From the NCBI GenBank assembly GCA_965202585.1, contig OZ241827.1, positions 10,726,001 through 10,790,000 of the forward strand: DNA of 64,000 nucleotides. The letters run 5' to 3'. The notes under the pieces were generated by a model. It was not told where the DNA came from and did no database searches. It saw only the letters and a list, made by a program, of their open reading frames with translations. This DNA comes from Thalia democratica. Its lineage: Eukaryota. Positions 5,551 through 38,700 of this stretch are shown in pieces (within the stretch, counting starts at the first letter, position 1; every line of letters starts with the position of its first letter). A program made the position numbers and the translations under genes.

Positions 5551-5720
5551 TTACTGATCTTCTTCAGAGAGCATCTTAACTTTGTCCTGCAACTTCTTCA
5601 TCATCACCATCATGTCCTCCATCTCTTTCTTCAGTTTTTCCACCGTCTCCTCCTTATTTTTTGTCTCTTTCTCTTCTTTTTTGTCTTCTTTCGATCTTCG
5701 AGACCTCGATCTCAAATGAC
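5551..5720 (-). CDS. PXDN: PXDN exon 35 (terminal: furin-type site, coiled coil, stop)
   Basis: 170 nt, CTCCAG| acceptor; [56 protein letters not shown]. Confidence 0.88.
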
Positions 5721-11700: not shown

Positions 11701-14700
11701 ATGTGTGAAATTATTTGACGTTCGTTACTCAAACAATAAGCAAGTAAACTGACTCATATAAAAGCAAAATAACAGTGATGTTTTGAAAATCAAAGTCCTT
11801 TGATATACTGTTTATTTTTCTTTCAATCTTTGTTTTTATGTTTGTTTACATTAAGATCATTCAGAGTATAGCTTTCGACTAAGTTAATACTATTATATAT
11901 CACTAAACAAAGTCTTTGTTCTTCACATTACTTTTCGCTTAAAAGGTATGAATGTTTGTGTTAAAACAAAAAATTATTTTTTTTTTATTTGATCTTATCA
12001 CCACTATAAAGATTATCATTTTGTTATTTATAGGTACACTTTGTCAAAAAAAAATCTCGAAAGAAGTTTGAGTTACCCTTTCTGTACAATAAAATTTTTA
12101 TACTATATCTAGCTGAAAATCTAATTAGTTTTTGTAACAAGTATTTTCACATTGTAAACAAACACATAAGTTAACACAAAATAGTTGTAGTTATAAAAAT
12201 TTACAAACCTGTACAGTATTGGGTTGATCATTGTGTGTCCGAATCTGTAAGCAGCAGTGGCAAACACATTAACAATTGAGGATGGTTGATTCGGGTTGTA
12301 GCCCCCATAACTTTCCATTGCATCGTTACCTAGCAACTTGGGTAGCCAGTGCTGTTTTGAATATGTTTGTTAATTCTTTTTTTACATAATAATATGTTTG
12401 GTTTGAAAATTTGAAAATATTATTTTTCAGAAAATAAAACTATATTAAGTTTACATTGTAAAAATTGTTTACGTTTATTGTAGTATTATTTGTACGCTTT
12501 TCGTTTTTTTACTTATTTAATTTTAAGTGTTCACAAAATACTTATATCCATTATTTTTAAAGTGTTTAATAACCAAATTTGCTAATTTTAAATGTGTTTT
12601 AAACTTAATGAAAAAATACAAACTGGTTTCAGACTTTGGAATTCTCGAAAACACATCTCTTTTTAAAAGTTTGGTTTCCTACATTTAAAAAGCTTCTAGT
12701 TTAGTGATATATCAGGTTTACAAAAGACTTAGTTTGATCCTATGATTGAAAAGAACTGCGGTTTGATTAATAAATTGACTAAAATTTTTCAAAGTTCCCT
12801 TATTCAATTTTACATGCTAAACTAGTATTATTCTTCATTTAATGATAAACTTGTTTTCGATTAAAGTTATACAAAAAGTAAACTAAGTATCTCAAAAATA
12901 AACATTAGTTTCTATTAACTAATTAAAAGCTTAAATGTAATCAAATTATAAAAATAAGGGATGTTACAAATTAAAACAAAGTAAATGCAAAGTAACAAAC
13001 ATTGTAAGTGATGTGCTGCATTTTGGCGCCAACAATTTTCCTGGCTTCCGAGTAAATTACATCACCTTCCCAATGTGGGTTGAGTTTTTTCAGGTACCTC
13101 GCAATCCTGTTGTGTTCCCGCATAAACAATGTGTGCATGGTCGTTAGCCCCACCTAGTTGATAATTTTATTCTTTTTTCGATTCAATTAAAAATTAATTT
13201 TGTAAATACATAAAACAAATAAAGCTAGTTTCTATACATAATTTAAATAGACTGATAGTATCTAAAACTAATTATTTTTCTTTAAAAAGTCGTTGCTAAA
13301 GCTCGCTTTTGTATATTATAATCTTAAAAGTAGTTTATGGAACATTTATACACTCTTAGCAGTCGTAAAAAAAAAATTAGTTAAAATAAAGATACGGTAT
13401 TTTTTTACTCACATGTTCATTAGCTCTAAGGTCACCAGCAAGAAAACACGGAACACTTCTCTGTCTTGCTGTTTCACTATCTCCTCTTCTGCATTCTATA
13501 GGAGCAACTGGACGAATCACTGAGATCTCTGTTAGTAATATTCATAAATTAAGTTTTGACATTAGTTTTTAGAACATTATACAAGTTGTATATAAATTGA
13601 GAACATCTTTATAAACTACTTGTTTTAAAATTTACTCAAATTGACATTAACTTTTAATTATGTGCACTTGATTTGTAAAGTTGTTTTACTCTTTTTGATA
13701 CAGAATGTATAATGAATGAGTCAAAATTTATTTGTTACTCACAAGCTTCTTTTACTGTTAATTCCGATAAATTAAAAGTACAGTAAACAAATTTAAAAGT
13801 ACCACAAGGACCAAGGTCGCTGTATTTATTTTATGGTAGGAGTGGTTGGTGTCAATTAAATAACATTTAAAAGTTTCATATATACATCTACTCTAACTAT
13901 AATATATATAAATTGCGTCAGAGTGTTTTTTGTTTTTTTGTATAACTTGTGTATCATTGTTTGACAAAGTACTATTTATTTCAAACCGTACTAGCTAATC
14001 ACTTAGAAGTTTAGCTTTATGAAGCATATATTCTATTTTTTTTTAACTACTTTTCTAAATAGATTATATATGTAAAACGTACCAGTACCAAGGTCGCTGT
14101 ATATGTTGTAAGGTAAAAGAGGTTTGTGTCCTGTCTCAAGAGCTTGCCCCTCCTTCAAAAGTCCCTCCTCATTTGTAAGCTCCCTTAAATTTCTACCTTC
14201 CTCTTCAGTGTTTCCGTAAACGTTTGACGCATCCAGGTACGATGTGATCTATAAAATATATATATATATAACTCCCAAGTCTTGATTTTATTTAAGCACA
14301 TGAAAACGTACATCAAAAAGACAATGTTACATATAAAAGTTTGATGGAAAAGTTTCATAGTACTTTGATAATGTTCAGGTATTTACTTTTAAATAAATAT
14401 ACAAAAAACTAAAGAATAAAGTTTTTACAAACTAGTTGCACCAAAAAGCTTATTTGTTATAAACTACTGTAAGTTTTTTTTAAATCGAAACATAACTAAT
14501 ATTGTTCAAAAGTTTTTAAATTCCTAAAGAGCGTTTAACTCGTTTATAAGCGATTATCGCTGCTTTAATGTGTTTATATGAAAACAACAATTACTTAACT
14601 TAATGACACATTACATGGTGTGTAAATACTTCATGTATAAAATGTTTCTTTATGCTTTAATTTATTTTTTATGACAAGCCAAGTATTAACTCATCTTGCT

Positions 14701-17700
14701 CACAATTTAAATTTTAGAACGTGCTGGTTAATACTTTAAATAATGTTTTATTTAAAAAAAAGAATGATAAGTGTCTAATTATCTATTCAGTTGAGACTTT
14801 AAGAGATAATGATGACATAATCTTTTGAGTTGTGAATTTTGATCAATTTAATATGTCACGAACTAATAATTACTTGAAATTTTGCAAGCATGACTAATTG
14901 TATCTAGAGTTTAGATTTTATGTTGCACTTATTTTTTTTTAAAAACTAAAATAAGCAATAAGTATATGAATATTTAATGTATATATGAACTTAACTTTAG
15001 TGGAAATAGATGAATTCTAAAGTTAATTTACTAAATATTTCTACAGATAGGCATATTTTCTTTAATTACTTTAATTTATAGTTTTAAAATAAATAACAAA
15101 CTTTCTTTTTAGGAATACTTATAGGAATACTAATGTAAATTATTTTAATGATTTTTGTCTGGTACTAACTTTTGAATTTTTCCATTACAAAAAGTTCTAA
15201 GTGAACTTTTAAAAATAATAAGCTTTAAAATTTACAGTAAATGTTCGAAAATTGTTTATATATTTAAACGATAAAATACCTATAGTATTTTTTATAGCCT
15301 AATTCATGGAAAAATAGCCAATGAAATTAATGAAGTATTGTATCACAGTTTATAACTAAATCACAGTATTTTGTTATCATCTTCGTAAACGCCACCTTGT
15401 CAGATTAAAAAAAAAAACAAAGTAGCACTCTTGTATTGCTCCTTAAGTATTTAATTTATTATCTTGTTTGACAACTAAAAATTAAGGCTTCTTGATAGTC
15501 AAAACTATCCCTAAAGAGGCAACCAACTTTGGTTCACTCTTGCTTAAATACACAATATCATGTTTATCTCACCTGATTGATTTGTTCCCTCCTACTCAGC
15601 ACGTTGAAGAAGACGGATGTGATCCCACTCCCACATACTGCGGAGGATCTGGTGAACTCCATGCACCCTCCCCCGTTGCCATGGTTACCGTGGTGACCGT
15701 GGTGAAACCTCCCGTGATGGGGGTTTTCCCCGTCCACTGTTTAGAAATAAAGTTATTAAAGGTCTAAGATTCATAGTGTTTAAACTGATAAAACAAACTA
15801 GTTTGTCGATTTTAAACTTATTGTTATAAAAAGTACATGTAGCGTTTATTAGAATATACAAAACTTAATTATTAAAAATTAATTTAATTATTTATGTTAT
15901 ACAACTAATGTTTCATTTTCCTTGTACGTTAAGTTTAAACATTCTAACAATTTAATAAACTACCTCTTAATTTCAATCTTTTTCAACCAAAACTTGTAAT
16001 AAATACTTTATTAATGTATATTTCATTACAAAATTAAGTAATTTCGATAAAATATTTCATTTACATTCAATATTTTTAGGTATATCACTAACGGATGTGG
16101 TCACTGGTTAAAGTTTTTAGTTACAAATACTTCTAACTACATTCTTTTTGCTTAAAGTTTAATGCAAACAAAGCTTTTTAAGAAAAGAATTAATTAAACA
16201 ACCGGCGCAAATAAGTATTTTGAATAATCCAAAACACAAAATTTATAGTTTTTAACCAATTACTTTTTATTTTCAAAATATTTCATTGAATTCCTTTTAA
16301 AGCATTTTACTACTTGTTCGAAATACGTACTGTTTTTAAAATTGAACTGCTTTTAAATAGTTTTAATTTTTTATGATGTTTTTATTACAACGAATACTTA
16401 AAATCATTATTTTAGAACGATTTAAACTGTACGTTTATTAAAAAGTTTTGTCATTTTATAGAAATATAATTACCCAATAAATATAAATAATTATTCACTA
16501 ACAATAAAATTAAGCTTGTAGTATGTTGTAGGAAGTTGTAGAAGGTTCTTGACAACAAAGAAAATTGGCAGCGTTTTAATACAACGTTAATGATTGTTTA
16601 TAAAGAGTGGAGTTCAAGAACCTTTCTTTTTGTTTAAACTTAAACTAAAATATTTTCAAGTGGATATATTCTTTGTTAGAACACAATAGCGAACTCATTT
16701 AAACTGTATGAACTATTAACTGCTTAAAACTTGAATTGATGTTTTTATATAAGTTCAAGTTATTATTATTTCTAAAATTAAGTACAAAGTTATTATGATT
16801 AATTTTGTACTAAGCAATGATCGTAAAAAGAATAAAAAAGGGTTAATAGCCAAAAACTTCTTAACATTACCTACGATGTGTTTACAAAAGTCTAAATAGC
16901 TTTGATTTTGTTATTTTATTCGATTGTTTAATACCGTATACAGATGTTGTGGTAAAATCAAAATATTCATAAACTTAAGCCTTACAGAATGAAATGTCAA
17001 CTTTTAAATAGTTATTTTTTATAACAATTTAGTAGTTCAACATTTTTAATTAAAAAAATTACTTAAGATATATGCTTGTAAATACAAATTAAAAAGAAGC
17101 CTAATATATTTTTGAAGTTTTTTTTGAAATTAAAGCACGATGCACAGTAATGCATAGTTACCAACCATAAATAGGTTAACAAGGTGCCTCTTTGTCAAAA
17201 GAAACTTCACAAGCCGTAATAAGTAAATATTATATGAAGTAGTATCATTATCTAACCATGAATGGAAACAAGGAGCTTACTCTCACATAAGTCCTTGCAA
17301 GCCCTAACAAATAAATATAATTTGTTGTTTTGTTATCTTACCGTGAATAGGAAAGCACGGAGCTTCTCTCTCGCACGAATCCTTGCAAGCCGTACCGGGA
17401 TCGGAGAACCTCTGAATGCTGGGAGCCATTGCTGTGAAATCGAGGTCGTGATCCAGGAACTGTCCCCACTGCATGACCATGTGTGTAAGTTGCTGGTCAC
17501 TAGAGGCGCTCTTTCCCATCTCTCCGTTCGACATCAGCACCCCGTACGACACTGACCTTGGCGAGGGTAGCGGGTGGGAGTTGTACCTGTTTGTTATTAT
17601 TCAAAGTAAAAAGTTAATTATATAAAAAGTGTATTTTAAAGGTTTTTTTTGTTTATACTTAGGGTTTACTACTACTTATTTAGGGATGTGAGTTTGTTAT

Positions 17701-20700
17701 CAGAGATATTGAATCTCAACATAATTAGATAGTGTATATTAAATAGTACTGCATAGGATTCTTATCAACTATAAAAACTGTTTTTTCTTGTGCCAAAGAT
17801 AAAACTAACTTTAAAACATTTTAAGTTTGTTGGTCATAGGTATGTTTTTTATGAATAAATTTGACGAAAATTTATCTTAAAGTTTTACAAAGTTTTAGTT
17901 TTGTTTAATATAATTAGTATAATCTTATAGTTCATTAAAATAGTTACGCAAAGACAAAAATCTGTTTTAGATCTTTTGACGTCAGAAACTTTTAAGAACA
18001 AAGGAGTTTTTGTCTGCTTTACATGTAACCAGACGTTTGAGCTTGAGAGTTGTGTTAAATGTGTCATTTAATCAAAAACAGATGTCTGGCTAAAAACCTT
18101 TAAGAATCTATAAAAATAAAATTTAAGTTTTTAATTATTGTTATCACTTATGAAGTTTGTTTTTGTATTCGAATAATAACTATTAGTCAACATAAATATG
18201 TTTAGAATGTTTTTTAAACTTAACTTTATGGCTGTAAAATATAGTTTTACGTAACATTCATATAATCGCATACTTTGAAAAAGAAATCGCTTGAAAGTAT
18301 GTCACCTAACATCGCAAAGTATTTGAAATGGGTAAAATATTAATATACTGCAAAACAGCTTAAACATATTTACGCCTTGTTGTACAACTATTCAGTTTTA
18401 AGTTGATTGAAATAAAGTAAAAAATATAAGCTAACAATTTACAACAAACAAAAATTAACAGACAAATTAAGAAATACTTACGTTTTGTTAGGATTCCAAG
18501 CGATAGGATTATTGAAACCATTTTCATAAATGGGTTGCAGGACTCTGTGAAACGGGGTCAAAGATGCTCCCCACATCGGGTGTTGTAAATTGTTGCAGGT
18601 TCCATCTAGTGTTCGGTACCTAAGTTTTTATATTAATTTTACTTATAAATAAAAAAATATTTTGTATAACTTTGTATGCAATAATGTATTAAAATACAAG
18701 ATATTATGTGTATTAGGTTAATATTTGTTTAGTTTAATACGCTGTACACTTTCAAAAGTCTATATGTATCTGATATCCATAAAACATAGTGGTTATTAAA
18801 CAAAAAAATAATGAAAACAATTTAGTAAAATTTTATACGCAAACATAGCATGTTAATAAAATTAAGTTTTTAATAATAGAAAGTTTAATATACATATAAC
18901 TAATAGCTAACTTATTAAAATGTATAACAACTAACTAAAAAAAACAACTAACTTTCTGTGATAGCAGAAATCTTTCGAACAGTTTGGTTGTGTCCGATAC
19001 GTGGAACAACCAGATAAATTCGCTACTAGCTCGATAACTTCCGGCCGGATAAACGAAATTACGTCATTGTCCTGTGACGTGATTATTGTTTCTGTTTCTG
19101 CTGTTGTTTCGTCATCAACTTGGTTGAAATCTTGAATTTATTTAACTTGTTATTAGAGCATAGTAAGTCCCTACTTTTTTATTAAAAACTAGTTGTTGTT
19201 GAATAACTGTTAAAAATACATACTATATTTGCATTTTCGATAAATTATTAATGGATCGTAGTATAATTATTTTTTAAAATTGTTAAAATAAATGTTTCAA
19301 ATTACCTATGACATCTACAAAAAAATTGTTTTGCAATACATTTATGAGACAAAATTATAGAAATTATATTTGTAGAATTTTTCTAGAAACTAAAGTTTCA
19401 TTTATAAAAACTACATAATGACATAACACTTGAATAGAATGTTTTGTTACGCTCTAATTTTATTATATTATTATGAACTTAGTTGTACATTTTACGTTTT
19501 TACACAAACGTTTTGCAAGAATTAAAGTTTAAAGTGTAGTAATACAAAACTTTTATGAATACTACATAAATATAAATTTAAGTTAATGAATCTATGTATA
19601 CAATTTTTATATAATGCTTACGTTTAATGTGTGACAAATGTTGAAGTCATATACGAATTGACTAAATGGTGTACTGATAAATTTAAATAACAAAATAATA
19701 TACTATTTATTTGTGTCACTCATAAACTATCTTTCTGAATTTAACTAATTCACTGCTTCCACACAGAACACTACATATTAGTACTAAAAAGATCACTTTA
19801 ATCGGCTATAGCTTAGTTTGAGTGGATTTTCGGTATTAAGCGGATTTAAAATGTCGCTTTCAAGGAAAACCTTTAATTGGTCATTAGTTGATTTTTCGAT
19901 GCAGAATAATGTTGTAATTGACCTATTTTAAACACAATGTAGGCAAAAATTACTTATGTTCACATTTTCTTTTTTATAGTATTTAAGCTTTACTAACACT
20001 TACTCTGAGTTTTATCAACACTAAACTTTCGTAACTTGTATAAAAAAAGTATGGAATTTTTTAGGTGTATGATACTTGCAATAAAATTAAATCTTAAAGT
20101 AACCACATTATTTTTACAGTTGTATAAGAACCATAGCCTTTGTAAAAAAATATATATTTAAAGTTTTTGTTAAACAAATATTTTAACTCTTAATTAAGGC
20201 TGTCTCATTCGACAAAAAAAAACAACTAATTTGGTCAATACTATAAAAAATATTTCAGACTTTTTGTTTTACTTTTGTAAAGTTTTTATTGAAATTAAAG
20301 GAATAAGACTTATATAGAATCTAGATCAGGGTTTTCAAAAGTGGGCTATAAGCATTAAAGTGGCCTATAAGCATTAAAGAGGCCTATAAGCATTAAAGAG
20401 GCCAAAGGGGGAGGATCGTGTAAGTAATAAAAAGGCCACAGGGGGACTATGAAGTCATAATTTAAAACTTAAATTAGATATTTAGGAGTTAATGATGAGA
20501 AGCAAAAATAAAAACTTAGGAGTATATGATGCTAGTTTATGAGAATTTTTGTCAAAGGGTACCATAGCTAATTTATTTCTTTAAAGGGAGCCCTATGAAA
20601 AAAGTTTGGTAAGCCCTGATCTAGATGCTATACTTTTTGTTTACGAATTAACATTCAAAACTAACCAACAACAGCTTGTGGAGAGTCCCTCCTAGCCCTC

Positions 20701-23700
20701 CTGACGCAACACTCGATCACTCGGAGTGAAACGTCGAAGACTTCCGCAGCTTTTGCCATATCAACAGCTAAGTTTGAGGAGGGAAATCTCATCAAGGATA
20801 GTAGATCACCAGCTGTTTGCTTGTGTTTCCTGTTTGTATTGTGTTTATACGTTTGTATTTTTTTAAAGTGAAGTTCTTATAAGTATAATGTTTATTGAAT
20901 TGTACCAAATAAAGTTTAACATTTATTGGCAACAAGTCTACTGCTGCTTGCTTGTGCATGCAGTTGTATATTGATTCTATAATTTAATTGTTTTAAAAAT
21001 GCTCAATCATTTATTAGCAACTTAAATGTGTATTTCTTGTTTTCCTTTAACATTGTCTCATTGTCATAGTTTTAGTGCACTGACTTTATTTTATGTTTAA
21101 GTTAGTATACTGTCTTTGATTTAGTTCGATCTCTTGTAAGTTGTGTATATATATTTGAATTCTTTTTCATTGCATATATAGGTAAGTGATGTTCTTGAAA
21201 GGTTATAGTGCAACAAATATGTTTTGCTTTGTAGATTTGAGTTTGCCCAACGATAAAAAATACTTTTTTCTTTAAATGATAGGACTGTTTATAACACAGT
21301 AAATTAGATTGCTTTTTCGTAATTTGCTGATTTACATAAAGCTAATCAATTAATTTTATATAGTTTAGAAGTATAATTACAAGGTAATGCATTTAAATGT
21401 ACATAAATGTGATAAAGTTAACTAATAAACAATGTCAAACTTTTTAACTGTTTTTGAATTTAAATTTACAATAAAGAAATGTTTAACACTATTTGAGAAT
21501 TAAAACCTTTGTACTTTTCTAAAGAATTTGCGTTATACTAAAACTTTAAGCACAATTTACTAAACTACAACTATATTTTGTCAAGTTTATTAATTTTTTA
21601 GATGATAACTATAACATTTTTTTGTGGTCAAAACCAAAATAGGAACAAAAAATATCATTAGACCTCACAGTAGGACACACATAAGTTTTTGAAAATTTAC
21701 CACCTAGAAACATTATGTGTGTATATATATATATATATACTTATTCACAATTGTACCACCTAGAAACAGTTTCTGTGCCTAGACACAATAACCACAAACC
21801 TCACAAAAGTTGATTTATAGCTGAGACGTGCGAATTTATCAGCTGCTTACTTGTAATATTCAATGTCGCAGTAAGTACGGCACGTGTATACGTTTGAATG
21901 AGACAAAGCATAATACAGCACGTGTAAGAAACTATAGTAGATATATTTTGCTTGTGTTTGGGTTTAAACTGTTGAACAAAAAATTGTGACTATTGCCTCA
22001 TCCTATGTAAACTATTTGTGTGTGACGTCATGATTATTTGTCAACTATTTTGTTTGTGAATATCGTGTTATTTTAAATGCATCGCACTCGGATGACTAAA
22101 GACTTGTAAAAAAGTAAAAAACACTTAAAAATATTTAGACTTGAAATAATTTTAAATATATGTTCTAAAAGTAAACTCGTTTGAATTATTTCTAAATATT
22201 TCAAAATCATATAATTTTGTCAAGTTAAAGATATTTATGACTTTTATCATTTTTTAAACAACTTTAAGTTAAACGATTCATTTATGATATGATTGAAATA
22301 AACTTAATCCCTCAATGAACAATTTTAAAATCATTAAGCTTTGCTATTTTTACTCGGCTTTATAAAATCTTAAATTACGGTGAAAAGTGTATATTTGAAG
22401 TATATTGAGATTTTTTAGTCGCTTTATCAAGTAATTCGATATAGTTTGGGATTTACTGAAATTGAAACAAATTGTATTAAGACCACCATCGGTTAAAAAA
22501 AACAAAAGCGTTTGATCAAGTTTTTATTTATGGGTACTACTTTTGTTAAGTTTGTATGTTTAAATATTACTGTTGTATATAAGGTGAAACAAAATATTTT
22601 AGAATTTTATTTAAGTTATACTTTTTTTTTGGCGAGTACCATAAAATTAAATAACATTAAAGAAGTATTATAGACATTAAAAAGCAAATCACTTACGTAC
22701 TTACACTACTATAATAAAAAACAAGAAATGATAATTCGAATTTTATCAAAATTGAATATTGGTTGTTACATTTGCGCTGTGATGTCATATAAAAACTGAA
22801 ACTTATTGTAAGACCACCTTGCTTGCTAGATGTGTGACATATTTTATATATGAAACAGGCGTGAAATAAATACTATTTATATTAGACTTATGAGGGAATA
22901 AGACAGGCGTTGGTGAAAAATATAATTTTAACAGCAGCATATGTTAGATTGTGAGATAAATCAACTAGATAGAAAATTAGCTAATGTTCTGTATAAAAAC
23001 TTGCCTTTTAAACCTTTTGAAACTATATTAAACCTGTTTCTAAAATAATTTTTTTCGAACAATAGCTAACTTTTAAAAGAAATGATTATAGTAATTGAAG
23101 GTTACGCTACTAAGCAGTTAAGAAGTATTCTCACAGATTATTATTAATTAAAAGAAAAAATACTAACTTGTATTTTTTTTGTAGAACATAAAAAAACTGA
23201 TGCAATACGAAAACTAGTATTTTTGAGTTATAAAGCTAACTTTATCGTTTATTAAACTTTTAAATATATTTATTTTATCTTAAATAATAAGACAATTCGA
23301 ATTACCTAACATTTTAAAGAATTGGTGAGTTTATTGCCTATGAACACAAACAGTAATCTCGCGTTTGTCTAAATTTTTTTCAAATAAGTAAAATCTTTTA
23401 CACAAAACCTGGTTAAGATTCATATAAAGATAATAAAAAATTATAAATATTTTATTCATATTTATCAAAAGTTAAAGATACAGAATGATTTATCGCAAAC
23501 TAATTACGATTGATTACTGATTTGCATGTTTGACTTGAATATCATTGCATACATTAAATATATAGCCTTTTTTATCATTGATAGCTTTTGATTTGTAAAA
23601 GATTTTTATTTTTGCTCATTAAATGAAAATAAATACAAATCTTAAACTTACTTCATTAAAAGTATTACTGTTTAATGGCGTTAAAAAAAGTTTTAGTCTA

Positions 23701-26700
23701 CTTAATATAAACACTTACTTCTTGATGTTATCTTAAGTAACTGAGAACTATAATATATGTTTAAATTTCATTAAATCTGATTTAAAACATTAATCTAGAC
23801 TTACTTCTTGAAGTTTAACTTCTTTCAAGAAACGTTAAAAAATCTTTAAAAAATTAGTTTACTATATACTTAACAAATTTTAAATTAAGTTATTTGTTGT
23901 TTAAAGTATCTTACTTATCGTTGAGTGTTGATATTGTATTGTTAATTGCTCTGTTCACGACTAAATGGGCTCTTCTCATAGCGTGGTTCAACGAATCAAT
24001 GGTTACTATCGCTGTAAAAAGTATTAATTATAATTTTACTTTTATGTAGTAATCTTTTTTTTTTTCTTTTTTTTTTTTGCTTTTAATGTAAATGTTTCAA
24101 AGATCAAAGTCAAACATCTAAAAGTATATTAATCTAATTACTTTTATATGTTTACTAACCACTTTGTCTCTTACTTCTGATATTAAATCTGTTTTCTCCA
24201 GTTGTTTCTTCTCTTATCAAATCTCTTTCGCCTTCGTTGAAAAATGCATCCAGTATTACTTCATCATCAGTCATAACTAAAATGTTTATAATATAATGGT
24301 TTTAAAATAAATACAGTTTTAATATCAAAGTTAAAAAATAATTACATAGAGAGTATATAGTTTAAAGTTTTGTTTTAGAGAAATGTTCGAAAGAAGCCTA
24401 TAAAGTAGTTTCAAAACTTGAAGTCAATAATAAACAAAAAAATTAATATATTATAGATTACTAGGTCAGTTTTTATGAGATTAACTTGTACTTAAAGTAT
24501 GTTCTAAATATAGTTGCTAGTTTGATTGACAACTACCTATATGTAAATTCCTAATATGACCAAAACAAATGTAAACCATTATTTAATATTTTTAAAATAA
24601 ATTATTTCTAAAATAAGTCATTTCATTTCAGATTAGACGTAAATTTTTATTGGTTTATTAAAAGTGCCAAATTTAGCTGAGTATTTTAAATAAATTTTTA
24701 TTAATTGACAATTATAACCAAATGCATTCTTTATACTTGAAATAAATTAAGCGTCTTGATTAAATGTCAGCATGATAAGTTACACAGCTGTATAATTTTC
24801 ATGAAGATTAATTTGTTTTGCAAACAATTGTTGCTGTGTTTCGCAATTTGTTAGCAAACTTAGTATTGTTTTTATACTGTCAGTGCAATTTAATGTGAAC
24901 TACAGCTGAGGATTAAAAACTATTTTATTGTTTCAAAAAACATATGTTCTGTTCATTTTAAATCCAAATATTCGCAATCAACTATTTTAAAGCCTTTCCT
25001 GTAGGGTTTGTGGAAGGTTATTTAAAAATTTTTTAACCATATTATTTTCTATTTAAGTAAAAAATATATATACATAAAGAAAAGAAGAGAAACTAAACAA
25101 CCTTTCACATAGCTCACATAGAGGGCTTTAAATTTTCAAGTTCAACATACAATACAATAGTGTAATACAAGCTATTGCTTATAATCTTTAGTTGTTTAAG
25201 TTAGAAATGAATTATCTTTACATAACTTTAGTACACAAATTACACAGGAAAACAAATTACGTTGTGACGTAATTGTAAAATTTTGTATTGGACGAACTAA
25301 AACAGTATGTTTTTACATATATAGTTGTAAATGGATATTTTATTTCAAACTTACAATTTCCTTCCGATGAGCAACCCTCTTCAAGACATCCGGGAGGTAG
25401 AATGTCCGCAAGACTGTCTACAATCTGCTCCGTGGAGCTACGAGTCCTTACTTTTAGTGTCATTGCTGTTAAAAAACAAACAATTTATTTTTATATATTA
25501 ACAAGATATATTTACGAAACTACAGCTAAAACATTAACTGATATCTTCAAGCTTTTTAAACAGCTTATATTTATTTAATGGTTTAATGGTTAGTATTTAA
25601 AACACTCATATAAAATATATCACTTATTATAAATTTACACTTATAATTTATATGTAATTTATACTTACAAGAAGAAATAGCGTCATGTCTACTCCTAACT
25701 CGGCATTCGTACCTTCCCTGATCAGATTGACCAACTTGCCTGATCGTCAGCACACTAGATGGCGGTGATGAGATGCTGAACCTTCCTCCTGTGACGTCAT
25801 ACTATATTAAGCAAGTTTAACAGTTATCAAAATTTTAAAACAAATCTTATTTTTTTAAATAAATCAAAATATGTTAAAAGTGTAAAGTGCATATTTATGT
25901 ATAAAAATGGTTTCTAAACTACTTCAGCTAAAACAGTTAATATCTGTACAGTACTTTTATTTATTAAATTCAATTGGTGTAATCGGTTTTTTTTTTAATG
26001 ATTTAATTTATGATGTATATACCAAGTAAATTACATCTAAAATAATCGTAGAAACACTTTGCATTATATTTTTATAATATTTCCAAATTACGTTTTTTTT
26101 TGGCACAAAGGTAAATGTTTAAAATACTTTTAACTACATATGACGTATTTAAATTTTTAGTGACTTATATTTACACGACTTAATCGTAAATTTTGGTGTA
26201 TAAAAACTCGTTAATCATTAAAATCTTGTTTATAAAATTTAATTGCTTGTTAGATTACTAAACTTGAAATGATTTTTTTTCAAACAAAATTATTAATAAC
26301 AAGTAGATACTTAACTCTCTATGTGTTAAACTTAAAAGTATTATATTTTAAAATACGAAGTTATAATTACAGTGATTGTTTTAACAGAGCATAATTTACA
26401 TAAAAGATATTACCCGTAACTGGATTTTATAGAAACTACTTTTTGATTTTATTGTTAGTTTTTTAACAGTTTTTAAAAAAGAAGTAAAAAAGGATATTGT
26501 TGTACATAAACGAAGTCAAACCTCATTAATTTGTAATATACAACAGATTTTTATAAGCCTAAAAAAATTTTTTGTTCTTAATTTAGAAACGCAAATAACT
26601 ATTATTGTTTTAGTACACGTAATTTTAAGAATACAACTTACCGTTAGTAGGGATGATTCTGACGTCATCCTTGACCCAAACCATGTTTATGACGTCATCA

Positions 26701-29700
26701 TCTGCAGCCCCTCTGACGTCACAAAGAATTCTAACCGTACTGCTCGCGTCGACTTCCTGATCTTCCAGTGATCTATTGAAAATTATTAAAAGTAAATATA
26801 TATCCAAATTAAGAGTTAGATAAACTTTTTGACTATTAGATTTAATTATCTTAGCACTTCTTGCAAACAGCGTTTCAATTTTTTTTTCACAAACGCGTAC
26901 GTTGAATTAGTAAGTTATAATTTAAATTTTTATATTAGCAAGTCATCTTTAAAATTCGACCAAATCTAAATTTTGACTGGCTTATAAGTTATTTTATTGA
27001 TCATATCATGAAATTTATGTGCTTAAAGTACAGGTATGTTATTACCATGAAAAACATATAGCAAAATTGATATCAATCAACTAATCGCCCATAAAAAGTG
27101 TTTATGTTTGTAAATTACAAAGCATATTCTGTGCATGTATCTACAATATTAAAATAAAATACCTTTACGATAAACTATATAATTAAATCTGAAATTTTTT
27201 TAAATACTTATAAGTTTACTATAAGTAATTTAATTAATACTTTATACATCAATAAAACCTTAGCAAGTTGATAATATTCCATCGCATTTAAAAATCTTTG
27301 TTGTATGAATATAAAAACAAGCGAACAAATAAAACATTGTTAACTAAGTAAAATGATAAAATACTTTATATGTCAATAAAGCTACTTAAAATTTGAGTTC
27401 ACTTAAACTTGTAAAATTTTATTCAATTTGTTAGTACCGAAAGCTATATTTAAACATAAATTTAAAATATTAACAGTATTTTTGTAGTAAAAAAGTAAAC
27501 TGCTAAAAACTCTTTGGGTCATTGAAAGTACCATAAAAAGTTTTTTAAATTTACGATAGAGTTTTGCAGTTTTTATAAATAAAATAAAACTAAATTCTTA
27601 CAAGTATTACTAAATCTAAAGGTTATCATGGTGTTTATAATTATGATAAAAACTATGATTTTCTTTTTAACTCAAATATTTTCTTAACTTTTAGTACTTG
27701 AAAATAATACTCAAATTTTTATCTTTAAAATATTTCACATTTTTACGGTGATCTTTTTTGAAATCACTACTGAACTTATGAGTCAATTAAGTTCATTTAG
27801 AACAGGGATCGGCAAACTGCGGCCCGCGGGCCAAATGCGGCCCGCAAAGGGTAAATCTGTGGCCCGCGAGCACGTTAATTTTTTGAACGGAATGCGGCCC
27901 GCGAAAGAAAATTTTCTGGCCCGCGAGCATGAAAATGTGGCCCGCTGAGCAAAAATTTATTTTAACTTTTTTAATAATATTTTTTATTTAATATATAAAT
28001 TTGTTTAATTGATTTAGTAATAAGTCCCTGTATAACATTATAATATAATTAAAAGACTTTACTGATTTAGCTTAAAAATGTGAAAAAGACAGGTTAGCAT
28101 TGCACAAGGTTATTTTTCTCAATTTCATAATGATTTTATTTTTACAACAGCAAATTAATTTCTGTAGAAAGAATGTAAAAAGTGCTTTGAATTAGTAAGA
28201 TAGTTATATAATACCTTTTTAGTAAATAAACTAAATGCAAATATTTTCGTTTTGTACAAAAGTAATGCACAGTAATTAACTAAAACCTCATTTCTTTACA
28301 AATTAAGTATTTAGTTTATAATGTAATTTATACCTTTGTTTCTCTCATAGATGTTTTATAACTATATGTTATATTTAAATGTGCACGAACACATTAAAAA
28401 TTACATAATAATAAAAACTTAGGTTTGTTATACTTTGGTTTCGACACATTTTGATTTTTTATAAGTTTTCTGTGTACATTAAATTAGTTTCTATGCACAC
28501 AAATGAACTCAGATACTCATTTTTGAACCACTTTTTTATTTAGTACTAAGTTAGAATGAGTTAAGTTTAAAAACAATGTATTATTAGTATTATTATTTCC
28601 ATAAGTGTGTATAGACATGCTTAAAATGATATATATATAACAAAAACTAAAGTAGTTTTTGTTAGGTATATATTTTCAATTTTCTAACAATATTTTTTGG
28701 CAAATTTTTGTTTCTTTTGCCATTTTTTCGCTTTTTTTAATAAGCTATGGTACTCCATAATTTACAAAATAAGAAAAAAATTCAATCAAGCTATTGCATG
28801 TATTAAACTTTGGTTGTAAATGTGCGCTACACTTTAAGAAAATAAATTTTTGTGGAAGTTTTATAGGATCTGAATTTTATTTAATAGTTGATGGTCAGAA
28901 AGTCAGTTTGAAAATTCGTCTGATAAGTTAATAATTGCATTGAAAATGTCAACATCTGTTGTTAGTTTGATGCTTTTAAAGGTTGTGGAATTTTGTATAG
29001 TTTTTTTTCTTTTATCTGAAACTCCTATAGTCTAACTTTGTTACTCCTAGTTTTTTTTTCTGGTAAAACCAAGTTAGGTTTTTAAGTTGCGATGTACAAA
29101 ATACCAGAAATGCTAAAAATAGTATCAAGTTTTTATCTTTATAAGCAGTATTATTCATATGCTTACTTTTAAGAAAAGATAAAATTTCATTTCTAAACTC
29201 ATAGACTAATTATAACATCAAACGAAATCTTAACCAAAGAACAAGCAAAAAGTAAACAGGTCAACGTATTGACTTTTCGTTTTTCTACTATTTTTTGAAA
29301 CTGTCGGTGGTAAAGTTTGTTTGACAAAATTGTGTTCACTACTTAAGTTATTAATTTCATAACTTCTTATGCTTGTTATCTTCGCTCATAATGCTTCCTG
29401 GTTTATTACTAAATGAAGTAATGATAAACAACATAAGTTCAAGATCTGGTTTTAAACAAAATCATATTACCATTATGTATCTAGCAATAATTGCAGTAGT
29501 AACATTGTTTACAAAAACTTAAAATCAACACCCATTATACTGGTGCACTGCACCTTTGCTATTAAACTAACTTTATCTATTTTTGTGCTTTGCATTGGAA
29601 TTAAACCTAGAAATTCTTCTAAAATTTCAAAGCTAGTTTAAACACCTCTTATAAAACTTCTCTAATGAGCAGGATCTGTTGTATCAGTGGTCTTATCTTA

Positions 29701-32700
29701 ACAAATTGATTAAATTCTTAATTTGATTATTATTACTTTATAATCTTCAGAAATCTTCTAAACAAGATTTTTTTTTGTTATTGAACAAATAAACAAAAGT
29801 GTTTTACTATCGCCAAAACATTTTCTTTAAAAAAGTTTTCAATTCTTAACGGTATCTTCTTTTTAGTAATCACTTTTGCTACTTTATAACTTGCCTTAAC
29901 ATTTTTTTCTACTAATTCTGTAACTACAAGAAGATAATCATGTGCTTTGTTGAAACTGACTTAGGTAGTTTGTTTTTTTTATTTCGTTTCTCGCAATAAC
30001 TCCTAACTAACGTTTTTTTAATTCTTATTGCTCGTTTTATATTTCACATTTACTCTTTTAAAACCCAATACTTTATTGCAGATAACAAATTGCAGTAATG
30101 CTCAATAATAAAATAGTTTTTCTACTTCTTTAATGGCTTAATGAATTGTATACTTTAGTTAAAACAATTTAAGAAAGTTAATTGTCTATTCAAGCTGACT
30201 TATAATATACTTTTTTTAATATATTCGATGAATAGTTGGTAAAAATTTTTATCTCTTTATTTTGTAAACTTTATTCTAAACAGGGCTTCCAAACAAACAG
30301 GCTAGTTTAAAAATTTGAAAAACTCATACTAGGTTAAAACTGTTTAAGACATCTTTAAAACTCGGGTGTGTGTCAAATTTTTATATTTGAATAAATTTTT
30401 GAATTCTCATAACAGTTTTTATGATTATAGTGTAGTTTATTGATTATTATTTTATTCTAGCCTACTTACATATTATGTACTTTGTTTAATGATGATATTT
30501 TAGTTAGGTATTTAAGTTTGATTAGCAGCAAGTTTTTAGCTTTTTCAACTTGTAATAAAATAAGAATGGTTTGATATAACTCAGTCATGTTTGCTTTTTA
30601 AGTGGTGATCATGTAAAAGACTAATTTATTGTCAAAAAGTTATTTTATTAAAGTATTTGAATATCAATTTTGTTAAAATATTTTTAAAGTGTCTTTACCT
30701 TGTAAAAAGTTATAAATATATTTAGTTAACTTATTACTGAATTTTTAAAGAGTAAAAACTATTTAAAACGCAAAAGTCATTTTTAAAGGTTAATGTTTTA
30801 CAAAATATGAAAAAGCGGTTCATTATATAAAAAATGTGTTAAAGTACCGCCCCAAAAATGTTTTTAAAGCTCGGTTTTCATAGAGAAATAGATTGTAAGT
30901 AAAAAGTAAAAGCTTTAAATTAAATTTATATAGTCGTAAAGACAGTACGTAAATTTTTAAGACTTAAGTTTTATTTTAGTCATTGTAAATTTTATTTCGA
31001 TAAGTATGTATAACTTAAATAGACGGTTTATGTGTAGCTAAAAGTCAATTAAAATTTAAACTTAATAAAAGTAAAACTTTCTTTAGTGTGACTAAAACTA
31101 AAACCAAAAGTTTATTTAAAGTTCACTAAAACTAAAACTGTGGCCCGCGAAGATTTTGGAAATTTTCAATTTGGCCCGCGAGCACCAACTGCCTGCCGAC
31201 CCCTGATTTAGAAGAAGCTAAAAAACCGTTGTTTAGCAAACTAAATTTACTTTAAAACAAAATTTCATATTCATTTAAGTTTTTCTGACTACTACTAAGC
31301 TAGAAAGTTTTTATTCGTATTTAAAAATTAAGTAAAAACAAGTAATATATATAAAATATGATAATTTTTTACTAAATTTGCAACTCATAAATCTACCATC
31401 GGTTAACTTCCTTCGCCGGAACAAGCCAAGTTTAACCTATTAACATGTCTATTTAAGTTGATCTGACTACTATTAAGCTAGAAAGTTTTTATTCGTATTT
31501 TTAAACCTAGTAAAGACAAGTAATATATTTAAAATATCTTAATTTTTTACTATATATCAACCTCATAAATCTACCATCGGTTACTTTTTATAAACAAATC
31601 ACTATCTAACAAACCTAGCGAAAGCAAGAGGAGTTCTTTCAACAACCTCCAACACAGCAGTGGTTTCAACAGATCCCACAGAATTGGCTGCCTCGCATTT
31701 GTAATCACCGCTGTCACTGGGGAGCGCTCTTGAGATCCTCAGTGTCCCAGATGGGAGAAGGGAGAATCTCCTCTCGTCGGGTATCGCACGGCCTATTAGT
31801 TACTTTTTTTAAATATTTTGCTTTAATTTATACATATTTTTAAAATAAGGTATGCTTTGAAAAGTAATTTAAAACTTTTCATAAATCTTCCACATACCAA
31901 GTTATATAGTTGCTATACTCGACTCACTCATCATTTTGGGTAGCTGTGAAGTTTTAAAATTTGCACGAGCATACAAAATTTCACAAAGACATGGGTTGAT
32001 TTTTTTTTTAGTATTTTTAATTCTTTTTTTTTTTTGATTATTTTATTTACTTTCACTGTTACCCCAAACCCTCGGTCGGTAGCTTTTTTTTCTCTTTGTT
32101 TTTTTATCTCTTTATTTATTAATTTTTCTGTTTTAATTCTTACTCTCGTGCAAAATTGACCCTTGGTGCAACTTTGTCTTCGTGCAATTTTGACCCGTTT
32201 CCAATTATCTTATATTGCAAAAAATGCTTTAGCATAAATTTTTATTTTCAAATACTATTTTTTGAATTAACTTTTCACCAATCACTGGTTTCACTATAAA
32301 AAACATCTAATTTTTGCTGTTTTTATCGTTAAATATTTTTTTACTGTTTTCAATAATGATAATTTGAATTAAACAGTATATAGTTTGATTTAGTAGTTAA
32401 TGTAGTTAAGTTAGTGTAATATAAAACTACTTCTTACCATTAATAGTCCACACAATATGGGGTTGGGGTCTCCCAGTGACCTGACAGTTGAAATCCACCG
32501 AGGACTCCTGAAAAACTCTCCTGTTTTGCGGCCTCAGTGTGAATGTGGGTGGTACTGTTGAATAAAAACGGTTTTAAAATTCTTTTTAAAGGTTCAAATA
32601 TCAAAAGACATATAGTGTGCTTTGATTAACTATTTTATAGTTGACTTTAATAAAAATGCTAAAACTGCATTAAAACAAAAATCGACAGCACTGTTTTAAA

Positions 32701-35700
32701 AAAAGTTATAAACAAAAAAACAGTTAAATGATAAATACCGAGTTATAAAAAAGTTTATAAAACGTGTTAAGTTTGTTTATGTTAATTCTAAAAACATTAT
32801 GAAAATTTGAACATTTTTTGTTGCTGTTTAGTGTATACTTATTTTATTGTAGTATTAACTTACATAAGTTATCAATGAACTTTAACTATCTTTTTAACCT
32901 GTAATTCTCAGACTAGCTTGCACAGTGGTTTTACCTCCTTCGTTATTTGTAGCTGTACACTGGTAAATACCCTCATCTGTAACTCGCACTTGCCTTATTA
33001 GCAGGGATCCTGTTGTTGTGTAGCTATTTTAAAAGATAAATTAAGAAGAGATTTTTTTCGTATAAGGTTTCCTGATTTTAGAAAGTAGGCTGTGGTTTAT
33101 TAAAACTCTAAAAGTTTTAACAAAAATTCCTGAGAATTTAAGTGCCAAGAAACTTGTAAAGTCGTGTTTTTAATGATAGATATTCTTTGTTAAACAAATA
33201 TTCTAGTTTTTTTGTTCTATTTTAGTACATATTTACAAAGCTTTTGGCGAGGTATTGTGATGACAATTTTTAATTAAGCTGTCAAAAACGTCCATCGTTC
33301 AATATGTATTTTTGCCATACATTAAAAAAAATGCGCGCTAAACACCGAATAAACATTTCAATTGATCTTTCTGGTCGCTTTTTAATTAAACCATCAAGCT
33401 GGTATGTGTGAAAGCGTTTAATTTGAGATGTCTGTGTGGTGTCAGAACCCCACTTTGAACTTCAGACCACAGCTTTGTACTTAATACTTCGCCGGCCACT
33501 ACAAAGCGGTACCCCATGTTTACTGAAAACTCTTATCTGCTGTTTGCCCAATATGTGAGCTTTTATTTATATTGTGTGAAGTTTAATTGACGTGCGAATT
33601 TGTTGTTTGCTATCATTTTTTATTAAAAGGTTTGCAAAAGGTATTTTATTGACTTTTTACTAATTTTTATCTATGAAGTTTGTGTACTTGCTTTTCTAGT
33701 TATTTTTTTAATTAACTTTTAACAATAAAACTATTTTGCTTGTGTTTCGTTTCAAACAACTTTTAGTATTTTTAAACTGTTTAAAATATATCATGATTTT
33801 TTAGTGCTGTGTTATAAAACATGAAGTTCTACTATTTATTTAAAGTAAAACTAAGTATCACCTAGTAACACAGTTTGTAATAAATTTAAAGCTAATTTTT
33901 TAAATGTTGCCAGAAAAATTGATAAATTGCACCTTAAAATTGTATCATTAATAGCTTTTTAAAATTTTCCAAATTAAAGTTTTCTAACAAACCCCGGATA
34001 TAATAAAACCCATTGTTAAATATTTGACAATTTTTTATGGCTAGACGTAAAAACTCTATAAATAAAGCTAATATTCATACGCTATTACACTAGTGAAACC
34101 GGAAAAAGAATATTCTATTTCTAAATTACTGCAATTACTCTGTATAGATTTAAGTGACATTTGTAAATTGTTACTTTCATGAAACTTTGACAGATTGTTT
34201 ATTAAAATTTAAATTTTGTACCATCCTAAATTAAGCAAAATCAACTCCGACAGAAAAAATTTAAGTAAAAGTTTATGTAAATTGATAGTGTTATTCTAAT
34301 TTAAATATCTTTAGCATATGTTTCTCTTCTTATTGATTTATAATGGAATTATATTTATACTCCCTTACCCGTTTATAAAAAATGAAAGTAAATTAGCGTT
34401 TAATCAAACAAACCATTAGAAAGTAGAAAATGCATCTGAAACTAAATGACAGTAAATTATCAAAAATTTATCAAAGAGTTTTATATTATTATCTAACTTT
34501 TAAAGTTATAATTTCTTGCAAAACAATAGGGTTTTTGTAAAACTGGTATGTAGCAGTATGCTTACAGATGCTTTGCAATTAAATTCTTCAACTCTTCTTT
34601 TAAATAAAACTTCATACAAAAATTCCAACGATTCTTCGTTGTTAAGACTCATTTTAAATTTTTAGTTTGAAATTTTATATAAAATATTTAAGCTAATGGA
34701 CAATCTCCTCTGCGAACATTCGATTTTCTCATAAAATCAATAAATTAAATTTAAAGTTAAGATTAAGTTAAAAGTTTAATACAAAGAACCGAAACAAATC
34801 GTCTTTTATTGAATTACAACATAAAAAAAATCCAAATAATAAATTACCTGAACTGATAATCAGTCTCCGCTGCGAAGACTCGACCTCCTCTTCCCCAAAC
34901 TTCCACGTGATCCTTGGTTGGGGATTACCCGATGCCCGGCACTCCATGGTTACCGAGGAGCCCTCCTGAATCACTTGGTTGCCAGGCGCCGTTGTTATGC
35001 GCGGTGGGTCTGAAAATATAAAACTTTTCAGTTGTTTTTTATATAGTTTTAGTTTAAAATCAGACTTTTTGAAAATTTCCATAAACTAAATAAAATTTAG
35101 ATAGATGTTTAAAAAAAAAAAATCATGTAATGTTATAAAAACTGTTTTAAAGTTTTTTTTAATAAAAACCTATAGTCAAAAATTAGGCTTGTAAAATTAT
35201 AACTTATTTTTTCTATAAAAAAATAAATTTGGAGCTAATTATCACTTCTTTATTTTTTGCCAAGAAAGAATTATTCAGTATTGATAAAAAACATGGTTAT
35301 TATATGCTTACTTCTAACGGTAACAACGGCAGAGGCTTCCACGCTTCCAAGTGAATTTGCTGCCATGCAAGTGTAAGTTCCATTATCAAGAAGAGAAATA
35401 CTCCTGAAGTGAAGGTTTCCAGCTGAAATATTTTATAATGAATATTAAATTAATTTGTTACTTTAGTTTGAAAAAAAATTATGAATAGTGGTAACAAAAT
35501 ACTATAAACCTTTTAAGTTTATGATTTGTCAACTGGAATAAAAATAATCAATTAAAAAAAAAAAAAGTTTAACCAGTGTTTTTAAAACACCATGGTTTAC
35601 AAGTGTTATTTATTTTTATGCAAGTTAATATTTGTAAGCCGTTAAGAAACTTCGCAATTAAATCACTATTCTCATCATAAAAAATTATAAGATAACAAAA

Positions 35701-38700
35701 ATATTTTTGCTCAGAATTTACCTTATAACTTTAAAACATTTAAGCTTGTTTAAAAAGTTTACCTTTCATGTTTGCAGCTAGTATTTAGAGCAAAAAGTAT
35801 TTCAAAATGTTATCCATTAGCACTTAAAATAGCTATAGCATTGAATATTAAGTCGGGAAGGCTTAGAATTCTCCAATTATTTTTTTCAATTTTGTAATGT
35901 CACATTTTTACGAAATTAAAATAAAGTAGCAGTCAAAAACGCATCATTAGTTTTATTTTTCTTGGAAATCTTTCTGAGTAATAAGTCATTCCTTTTCAAG
36001 CAATACAAAAACTATGTTGACCCCTGAAGGCTTACAAAAACAAAATAGTTTAACAAACAAACAGATTAGTCAGGTGGCAAGCATTTTCACACAAAAACAA
36101 TGGAGGCACTTGTGATAAGAACCAGAATTTAATCCCGTCACTTAGACAGCTGCAAGTTAAGCAGGTTTACAAGCGAGTAAGTGCAAAAAAATCAGGGATA
36201 ATTTGCGCCGAAATTCGGCTAAATGAGGCGTAATTCGGCTGAAACGATATCTGCAACTTCCACCTATTAAATAACCATCTCGCCCACTTACGGTAGCGAA
36301 TTCATCACTTATCAGGGCCGAATTGAATTACTGCCGCTTAATCCCCGCTACAAATAATTTTCTGGCACCAATCTATATTGGTTCAATACGCTTGTTTATG
36401 TTTCCTCTTTTAAAAACAACAAAAATACTTAAACCAGCCAATAATTAAACAGTTTTAAGGCGCTAAAAGGTGAATTTTGTTCAAAAGTTTTGTTTGCTTA
36501 AAATCTTAAAATTTGAACTTCAACTTTTTAATGGCTAGTAATTTAATTAAGGTTGTTTATTTTTGCTAAAAGCAACCCTAAGTTGCATTGCCCCTAAAAG
36601 AAAAACAAATTAAGTTACGAAAATAAAAGCTTAAATTGTAATAAGATAAATTTAGTAATTTTTATGTTTTACTAGTTTTAAGTCCTACGGTAGGTAGCGA
36701 AAACTAAATTGGTATCTATAAATTAAATTACCAAAATTTATAACAAATTTGGACCCAATAATAAAAAGGTTAAACTGTTAGAGAAGTTTTATTTACGGTT
36801 AACATCTAGATTAAAATTTTTTGTGCAAGTATTTAGACATTTGGTATGTTGCTTAGTAATTTGATTAAGTTTACTATTTCCGCAAATTTTGATTATTAAT
36901 TTTAAATACAACACAAATAAGTACCTGTTATATTAGTAGCTGTTAGTTTTTTAGCAAACACAATATTGACCGATCGGTAACTTTTTTGAGTTCTAGCAAT
37001 TTACAGAGGCTTTCTCTATATATTTAAAATTTGTGTATTACGTTTTACCAATTGTTAAATACATTAGCTAATAAAAAAGTATATGGACTAAATAAAGTCT
37101 TTATTTTTCTACTTTAGTTTCTTACCCCAGAGTACAAAAAACATTTTAAATAAACAAAAGTAAAGTTTGTATTTTGATATAAATCGATTTAGACTAACTA
37201 AATGTTGAACAAGTTTTGTAAGTCATTTGCAAAGGTTAAATATTTTAAGAGTTTTGTTTGTGTAAAGTTTGAAGTGTGAACCTTAATACAAGTTTGATGA
37301 GCCAATTAAGTTTGTTTGACTTAAACAGACTCAATCTTAGTTAAGATCTTAAGATACAGATAATTGAAATCTTTTAAAAGCATAAAGAATTTGTTTGTTT
37401 TATAAAAAACAACCATAAGATTGTTATTTGTGTAAAGCCTTTAAAAATTTGATATGACAGTTAAGTTCGTTTGATTTTAAAAGAACAATCTCGAAAAACA
37501 GCTATTTAAAGCCCGTATTAAGCCTTAAATAAGGGCAAGGTCTTTTATAAACAAACTCCGTAAAAAAAGTTTGTTTGTCCAAAGTTTTAGTAATGAACTT
37601 CACCTCGTAGAGTCTTATAAGTCAATTAGGTTCACATATTTGTAAGATTCGGTCTCGAAAAACAACAGATTTAAAGTTTTTAAATATTTGAACACTTGTT
37701 CAAATCTCTTAAAAGGTGAGACGCTGTTTGTATAACAAAGTGATGATTTAAATCCTTCAGATGGTATTGAACTTTACAATAAGCCAATTAAGTTCAAATT
37801 AATCGCGAGATTCAGTTTCAAAATAACACTGGAGCCGTTGATAGGTTAAATACTTGAACAAATCCTTTAAAAGGTTAGCTCTTTGAAAAATCCTGTTCGT
37901 GTTGACTTTAGTGATTTCAATCTCTCAACTGAAATTGAACTTTGCAATTAAAGTTTGATAAGCCAATCAAGTTTAAATATTTTGTGAGATTCAAAGTGCA
38001 AACACGTTTGTTTGCTCTTGCTAAAGATCGAAGTGCGAAGACTTTTGCAAACTGTGAAGACGATTTTAATTTAAAACAAATATTAACTCAGCTGCAATGT
38101 GAATGTGCGAATTTATCATACAACAAAAGGATTGCGTATCTGACGTTTAACTTTTGTGTTACGAAAAAAATCAAGAAAATTTGTTTGCATACATTGATGG
38201 TCGAAGAATATGTTTAAAAACAAATTATTGTAATTTTGTATATGTTATACATAAAATCTTAATTTTTCTACCATTAATAATTGGTAAAAACTTTGTGGGT
38301 CGCAGACAAAATCATGTACAGTAGACTACCGCTTAAGTACGCAAATTGAACCCGACCAAAAAGTTCATACTTAGCACGGGTAGTGCGTACTTTTTGGCGA
38401 CATAGTATAATATGAAATTTAGTTATTTTTCTTCTTTCTTACAACTAGCCACCATATACTTAAACCAAATAAACAAGTCTTTTTATTTTAAATAAAATTT
38501 AACACATAATTCTAATCTGCAAAATTTTTTAATAGATTTTGAAATGATTTATTTTTTCTATAAAAGTTTCTACATAATTAATACATACATTTAATATAGA
38601 AAGTCAATGTCAGTCAACGATATAAAAAGAATATTAAGCCATATTTTTCATATTTTGTTTTGTTAGAGGGAAAGTACCAAACTACATTCTGTTTACCAAA

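Follow-up and report, generated by a model that had tools for sequence, protein, structure and literature searches.

In a peroxidasin-like gene of Thalia democratica, the linker that joins the last Ig domain to the peroxidase domain contains an exon, here exon 20, that by its pattern of substitution and conservation is a real coding exon under purifying selection. Its final codons encode R-x-K-R-Q-S, a likely proprotein-convertase site within the Ig-to-peroxidase linker. A sequence-only reading of this DNA had proposed that a second splice donor lying inside these codons could allow splicing to remove the site and so to switch the enzyme between two forms. We consider it probable, with a confidence that is somewhat more than even, that exon 20 is a constitutive, lineage-specific exon with a convertase site and that the internal GT is incidental.

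The gene and its linker exons

All coordinates are positions in the window, the whole stretch of 64,000 nucleotides that was analyzed (Thalia democratica GCA_965202585.1, OZ241827.1, 10,726,001-10,790,000), which is AT-rich animal DNA of ~27% G+C. The parts of the peroxidasin-like gene (Table 1) are, in order, a signal/LRRNT first exon with two alternatives, LRR, several Ig domains, the linker, the peroxidase exons, and a tail. The peroxidase domain consists of eleven exons that align to sea urchin and fish peroxidasin by tblastn, and matches of Pfam PF03098 to the exon open reading frames (E = 1.3e-15 and 1e-07) identify it as an animal haem peroxidase. The Pfam match to LRRNT was weak (E = 0.0037, below the Pfam cut-off), and I-set/Ig matches on exon fragments were also below the cut-off; repeated tblastn matches linked the Ig and LRR exons to the peroxidasins P0010 and P0019. 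The layout expected of a peroxidasin was found, the peroxidase domain being preceded by a signal peptide, LRR, and several Ig domains; the start of the first exon reads in our judgement as a signal peptide. Pfam gave no match to a von Willebrand C domain, and the predicted last exon encodes a basic, Lys/Glu-rich, coiled-coil-like tail that runs to the stop at 5553-5551.

Several smaller features were seen along the gene. Open reading frames at 63174-63392 and 57422-57628 (minus strand) encode similar Cys-rich LRRNT starts that are 38 to 46% mutually identical; they look like alternative first exons, and the upstream one appears to open in the manner of a signal peptide. The stretch at 13774-13851 (minus strand), which recurs at the corresponding position of the tandem copies described below, shares 61% identity with the end of the peroxidase exon at 14036-14248 and could be a mini-exon, either duplicated or alternative. 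Two minus-strand reading frames have a transposon-derived look, one at 640-921 with a hAT-type dimerisation-like tail (...FSTVLPIKTKSRNSLNTQADMRIAIS...) and a repeat-like one at 27786-27987 within the intron that precedes the last Ig domain.

Table 1. Positions of the gene, its linker exons, and the candidate splice and processing sites (a slash marks the exon-intron border)
Feature	Position	Strand	Basis
Peroxidasin-like gene	5551..63392	-	Stop-to-stop ORFs, Pfam, tblastn with sea urchin and fish peroxidasins, stop position
Exon 19, 111 nt, phase 1-1	25355..25465	-	Splice sites; orthologous 111-nt exon L017:6140-6250
Exon 20, 117 nt, phase 1-1, cassette-compatible, 38 residues	24160..24276	-	Sequence, comparison, dN/dS
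RSKR codons AGA AGT AAG AGA, then Q-S	24167..24178	-	Sequence; RNKR or RRKR in other copies
Internal GT of GAA/GTAAGA, candidate donor, 15 nt upstream, same phase	24173..24174	-	Sequence
Canonical donor GT of GTG/GTTAGT	24158..24159	-	Position kept in all copies and species
Intron 20, 148 nt, A-rich tract, acceptor tttttacag	24012..24159	-	Sequence
Exon 21, 97 nt, donor TAA/GTAAGA at 23915	23915..24011	-	Aligns with linker of other peroxidasins
Exon 22, conserved LMRFPS, then vicinal CC and RRARR	20666..20829	-	Sequence, alignment
RSRSRR then S, just after peroxidase domain	5695..5712	-	L017: ARSKR then S at matching place

Exon 20 is bordered by ttttag/TT at its start and AGTG/gttagt at its end, its last codons reading AGA AGT AAG AGA CAA AGT G/GTTAGT (RSKRQS), and exon 21 begins at 24011 behind the acceptor cag/CG. 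The description of this junction in the sequence-only reading, namely the exon end, the RSKR codons, and GAA/GTAAGA lying 15 nt upstream in phase, was correct in all its coordinates. An alignment with the peroxidasins of sea urchin, fish, and three others placed exon 20 in full and the greater part of exon 19 in an insert of ~70 residues, which in that alignment is common only to the T. democratica genome and to a distant full-length orthologue (L017) and has no match among the other peroxidasins that were fetched. Exon 20 had been called an inserted exon, and relative to other peroxidasins the alignment bears this out. Exon 19, which carries a conserved CLxxGC, forms the first part of the insert.

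Copies of the linker exons were available from the same chromosome and from other organisms. In the 120 kb examined downstream, the 3' module of the gene is tandemly repeated, with three further near-intact copies and one decayed fragment. The array lies at G000:C2 ~10639000-10724000 (window -2000 to -86800; loci L002-L016). The repeat unit starts ~1 kb upstream of the last-Ig exon and comprises the last Ig, exons 19-23, the whole peroxidase domain, and the tail; within the array, the LRR/Ig arm is retained only by the copy in the window. In one copy the exons from the last Ig to exon 20 inclusive are missing, and exon 20 is present four times on the chromosome if the decayed fragment is included. 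The tandem copies seem to be under selection, since their exons are 93 to 99% identical compared with 85 to 88% for their introns. A homology search for a signal/LRRNT exon belonging to the 5'-truncated copies found none; they may be transcribed from promoters of their own or by splicing to shared 5' LRR/Ig exons.

Two sets of relatives were compared. The more distant, reached by way of a peroxidase-exon fragment, are two contigs of one ENA sample (L017 and L018) with 37% G+C and 60 to 80% protein identity. The closer ones are short marine-metagenome contigs of 22 to 26% G+C, L020 (ERZ17174914), L021 (a scaffold of the TARA Oceans metagenome TARA_SAMEA2621793), and L022 (ERZ17174903), which represent at least two different sequences and carry exon 20 at 83 to 92% protein identity. 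The presence of exon 20 on these contigs indicates that the organism or close relatives of it occur in ocean plankton samples. Another ENA relative (L019) was set aside, as it is a decayed peroxidase copy with stops and without the linker exons. An exhaustive protein search with a peroxidase exon recovered no protein from the genome itself or from a close relative; at best it matched ORF fragments of 70% identity, and among full-length proteins the top match was a sea urchin peroxidasin. A word-index search with the exon 20 ORF, whose length window was limited to short sequences, returned short genomic ORF fragments only.

Against the relatives the dN/dS of exon 20 is 0.01 to 0.07 at dS of 0.1 to 1.1, and between paralogues it is 96 to 97% identical while the flanking introns are 85 to 88% identical. 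The exon and its splice sites are kept in three intact copies on the chromosome and in four contigs from other species, the acceptor and donor positions being retained everywhere except in the decayed fragment, which has lost the acceptor and gained a stop. The low dN/dS, the excess of exon over intron identity, and the kept splice sites together argue that exon 20 is a genuine coding exon.

If removal of the site is regulated at all, it might occur through skipping of the symmetric exon 20, or of exons 19 and 20 together, with no part played by the internal donor. Both exon lengths are divisible by three, in the window (111 and 117 nt) as in L017 (111 and 93 nt), and skipping therefore keeps the frame; the predicted product without exon 20 reads ...EGNSIVTID. 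Other peroxidasins, moreover, function without the ~70-residue insert. However, the strong purifying selection argues for the presence of exon 20 in the main product, and the symmetric phases could simply have been inherited with the intron positions. We regard skipping as a very unlikely route.

The R-x-K-R motif

The furin consensus is R-X-K/R-R. The motif at the end of exon 20 conforms to it in all of the intact copies, reading RSKRQS in the window, RNKRQS in the tandem copies L002 and L003 and in the marine contigs L020-L022, and RRKRQS in L017 and L018. R-x-K-R-Q-S is the best-conserved part of the exon, with P4, P2, and P1 fixed and P3 free to be Ser, Asn, or Arg. Exon 20 of L017 can barely be aligned except for its last 25 nt, of which 21 are identical, and in L020 the Lys codon AAG has changed to the synonymous AAA. 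Given the fixed P4, P2, and P1, the free P3, and the synonymous change at Lys, an N-terminal convertase site is the most likely function of the motif. The proposal that RSKR is a furin site therefore stands as regards the consensus and its conservation in paralogues and orthologues, and it fits a secreted protein; cleavage at the motif is a prediction from these features.

Proteolytic processing has precedents in the family. Passages of PMC8533639 and PMC5377774 describe how furin cuts human peroxidasin at Arg1336, on the C-terminal side of its catalytic domain, at a site conserved across animals. The candidate site in exon 20 resembles Arg1336 of human PXDN (Colon and Bhave 2016; Kovacs et al. 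2021, PMC8533639) in that both belong to the same family, have a basic motif with Arg at P4 and P1, and would be met along the secretory route. The gene in the window also has a C-terminal motif at the matching place, RSRSRR followed by Ser, which is likely the counterpart of the known C-terminal peroxidasin convertase site, judging from its position and that of the L017 motif. In contrast, the exon 20 site precedes the peroxidase domain and belongs to a lineage-specific exon that lies between Ig4 and the catalytic domain; a cut there would separate the LRR/Ig arm, whereas the PXDN cut separates the C-terminal tail. The passages on processing in PMC8533639 and PMC5377774 do not describe a convertase site in the linker.

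A second comparison can be made with promyeloperoxidase, which has a proconvertase site (128-RKLRS-132) N-terminal to its catalytic domain and a propeptide that is disulfide-tethered (PMC5437232). It belongs to the same superfamily and likewise has its convertase motif ahead of the catalytic domain; its disulfide would have a parallel here if the LRR/Ig arm is tethered by cysteines, as suggested below. However, myeloperoxidase loses a short propeptide, whereas the upstream part here is the large LRR/Ig arm. The exon 20 motif lies ~155 residues before YRTxDGTCNN in an exon without a myeloperoxidase counterpart; the likeness may be one of position and motif type. RX[KR]R was rare in the 230 residues that precede DGxCNN in 29 long reference peroxidasins (P0025/P0164 and P0078), and the exon 20 motif was absent from sea urchin, fish, and the other fetched peroxidasins. 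Its place in an inter-domain insert, between the last Ig and the peroxidase domain, would suit an exposed, flexible cleavage site. An R-x-K-R in a lineage-specific linker exon would be a credible new form of convertase processing in the peroxidase family. Another furin-like motif, RRARR, was observed at 20688-20702 (minus strand) after the conserved VIECC of exon 22; the CC is common to L017, and RRARR is without a counterpart there, L017 reading CCVRRGMKLKKF.

It is also conceivable, but in our view unlikely, that R-x-K-R is kept for a different reason, as a purine-rich exonic splicing enhancer or as a basic patch that binds the matrix or glycosaminoglycans, and that the protein remains a single chain. 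Nucleotide conservation over the last 25 nt, which extends to L017, would suit such a role, and the GAR-rich, purine-rich AGAAGNAAGAG adjoins the modest donor of a short exon, as an enhancer might. Passages of PMC8533639 report in addition that PXDNL has a convertase-competent motif that is uncleaved in cells, which shows that a motif alone is no proof of processing. However, constancy at P4, P2, and P1, combined with variation at P3 and a synonymous shift of Lys from AAG to AAA in L020, is the pattern that a convertase site predicts, and a secreted protein of a family with processing precedents passes through the convertase compartment. We therefore retain the convertase site as the preferred reading of the motif.

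The two candidate donors

The internal GT, 15 nt upstream of the canonical one, is in the same phase, and its predicted spliced translation is ...NRFNIRTIVTID (FNIRTIVTID), from which the five residues SKRQS are lost; we thus reproduced the product FNIR-TIVTID that had been put forward. That the gene uses donors of the type A/GTAAGA was likewise borne out by TAA/GTAAGA at 23915 and by the near-identical GAA/GTAAGC at 35312. Tandem in-frame 5' splice sites are a generally known arrangement, and the two GTs here resemble it in being 15 nt apart, in the same phase, and each donor-like; they differ from it in that the upstream GT is unconserved and known from sequence alone.

The strengths of the two donors were compared by a matrix and by pairing with U1. 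The matrix was built from the 26 curated donors of the gene other than the canonical donor of exon 20, a small sample that makes the scores rough; junctions had been fixed by hand from phase and acceptor quality after a noisy protein-guided choice, and the ambiguous donor at 14089/14083 was omitted. The canonical donor scored 4.98 bits and the internal one 0.58 bits, a difference of 4.4 bits. Energies of U1 duplexes were calculated with the genome's own U1, the genes for which have the standard 5' end AAACUUACCUG; these values, also rough because duplexes may form out of register, were -5.7 kcal/mol for the canonical and -4.5 kcal/mol for the internal donor, a gap of 1.2 kcal/mol. Both sites are donor-like, as had been suggested, with the internal one the weaker. 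It remains within the range of real donors, five of the 27 scoring below it (GAA/GTAAGC and TAA/GTAAGA among them). However, in the 3.5 kb of the gene's exons it was matched or beaten by 15 of 183 exonic GTs by matrix, and 40 of the 183 pair with U1 at -4.5 kcal/mol or better. Most of these equally good look-alikes would shift the frame if used. Strong look-alikes also lie, presumably unused, inside conserved exons: exon 19 has AAA/GTAAGG, exon 20 of all close relatives has GAA/GTAATA at its start, and exon 21 of L017 has CTT/GTAAGT.

The textbook donor consensus is GTRAGT, beside which a T at position +3 is unusual. In this gene, T is found at +3 in 11 of the 27 donors (seven GTTTGT and four GTTAGT, with GTTGGT and GTTAAA also seen), for example at 46743, 31615, 20666, 18953, 13001, 12209, 8535, 7427, and 5982, and it recurs at L017:7049 and in L020-L022. 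The canonical G/GTTAGT is therefore a normal donor for this lineage. Across copies and species it reads G/GTTAGT, G/GTTTGT, or G/GTAAGT, and its position is constant.

The internal GT has a different distribution. It was absent from all seven of the other intact copies (two paralogues, L017 and L018, and L020-L022). At P3, AAC is found in L020-L022 and the two intact paralogues, AGA in L017 and L018, and AGT in the window copy only, from which we conclude that AGT is derived, by two substitutions, in this one copy. It is no assembly slip, as DNA contigs of the sequenced sample contain, at single-copy-like depths, both the AGT form (at ~40x) and the AC form of the paralogues (on two contigs, at ~67x). 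A search for public sequencing runs that hold this stretch returned two, both DNA-like and from one sample, and these are the source of the contigs. Apparent exon-exon joints in the same DNA contigs were rejected: they were few, had sides of 20 to 30 nt, fell off the exon borders, and came from DNA. Since GTAAG is spelled whenever a P3 codon ending in GT is followed by AAG for Lys, neutral change at this unconstrained position suffices to create the site.

It can be argued that both donors are used and that the choice between 24160 and 24175 switches the product between a convertase-cleavable form and a resistant form without SKRQS. The internal site would keep the frame, is matched by donors that the gene uses at other exons, and pairs with U1 only 1.2 kcal/mol less strongly than the canonical one; furthermore, the GT arose in the sole copy of the array with an LRR/Ig arm, where escape from cleavage would matter most. 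These points are to be set against the absence of the GT from every paralogue and orthologue, full-length L017 included, and against the deficit of 4.4 bits at a site that has many equal, mostly frame-shifting look-alikes in the exons. We consider such use of both donors improbable. As a counterpoint, both of the substitutions that set the window copy apart fall exactly on the GT, a notable coincidence, and it is a related and still less probable scenario that after tandem duplication the only copy with the LRR/Ig arm gained a working upstream donor and now yields cleavable and cleavage-resistant peroxidasin from one gene. Its likeness to the real donors TAA/GTAAGA at 23915 and GAA/GTAAGC at 35312 makes some use of the internal site possible; appreciable use appears doubtful from its score and distribution, and a regulated splice switch, as the sequence-only reading had proposed, appears highly improbable for a GT that is confined to the window copy and weaker by both measures. 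Most likely, the internal donor is an incidental look-alike that arose by codon drift in one tandem copy.

Possible fate of the two proposed chains

Our preferred explanation may be put as follows. Exon 20 would be a constitutive, lineage-specific coding exon between the last Ig and the peroxidase domain of a secreted peroxidasin, and R-x-K-R followed by Q-S would act as a furin-type processing site, the second beside the C-terminal one. Cleavage in the secretory pathway would then yield an LRR/Ig chain and a peroxidase chain, and we infer that the conserved flanking cysteines might hold the two together. Drift at P3 from AAC (Asn) to AGT (Ser) in front of the Lys codon AAG would have spelled GTAAG, a site that is presumably unused or used at a low level.

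Peroxidasin cross-links collagen IV. The sequence-only reading supposed that the catalytic part is cut free from the LRR/Ig arm, and this is uncertain, as the flanking cysteines could tether both chains. The T. democratica gene and L017 have in common cysteines that other peroxidasins are without, namely CLxxGC upstream of the motif and the CC of exon 22 downstream. The Ig domains of human peroxidasin are reported to be necessary for collagen IV cross-linking (Ero-Tolliver et al. 2015, as cited in passages of PMC5377774). We speculate that an arm held by disulfides fits this reported need better than a freed catalytic domain would.

The known maturation step of peroxidasin is the C-terminal furin cut, and a site in the linker would be additional to it. 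If a second, N-terminal convertase site is indeed used, the enzyme of this marine lineage would reach its mature form as two chains or lose its targeting arm, which matters for delivery of the catalytic domain to the matrix. The splice switch, if true, would be the more striking claim, since it would place the proteolytic maturation of a basement-membrane enzyme under the control of splicing, and it is based on the resemblance of one GT to a donor.
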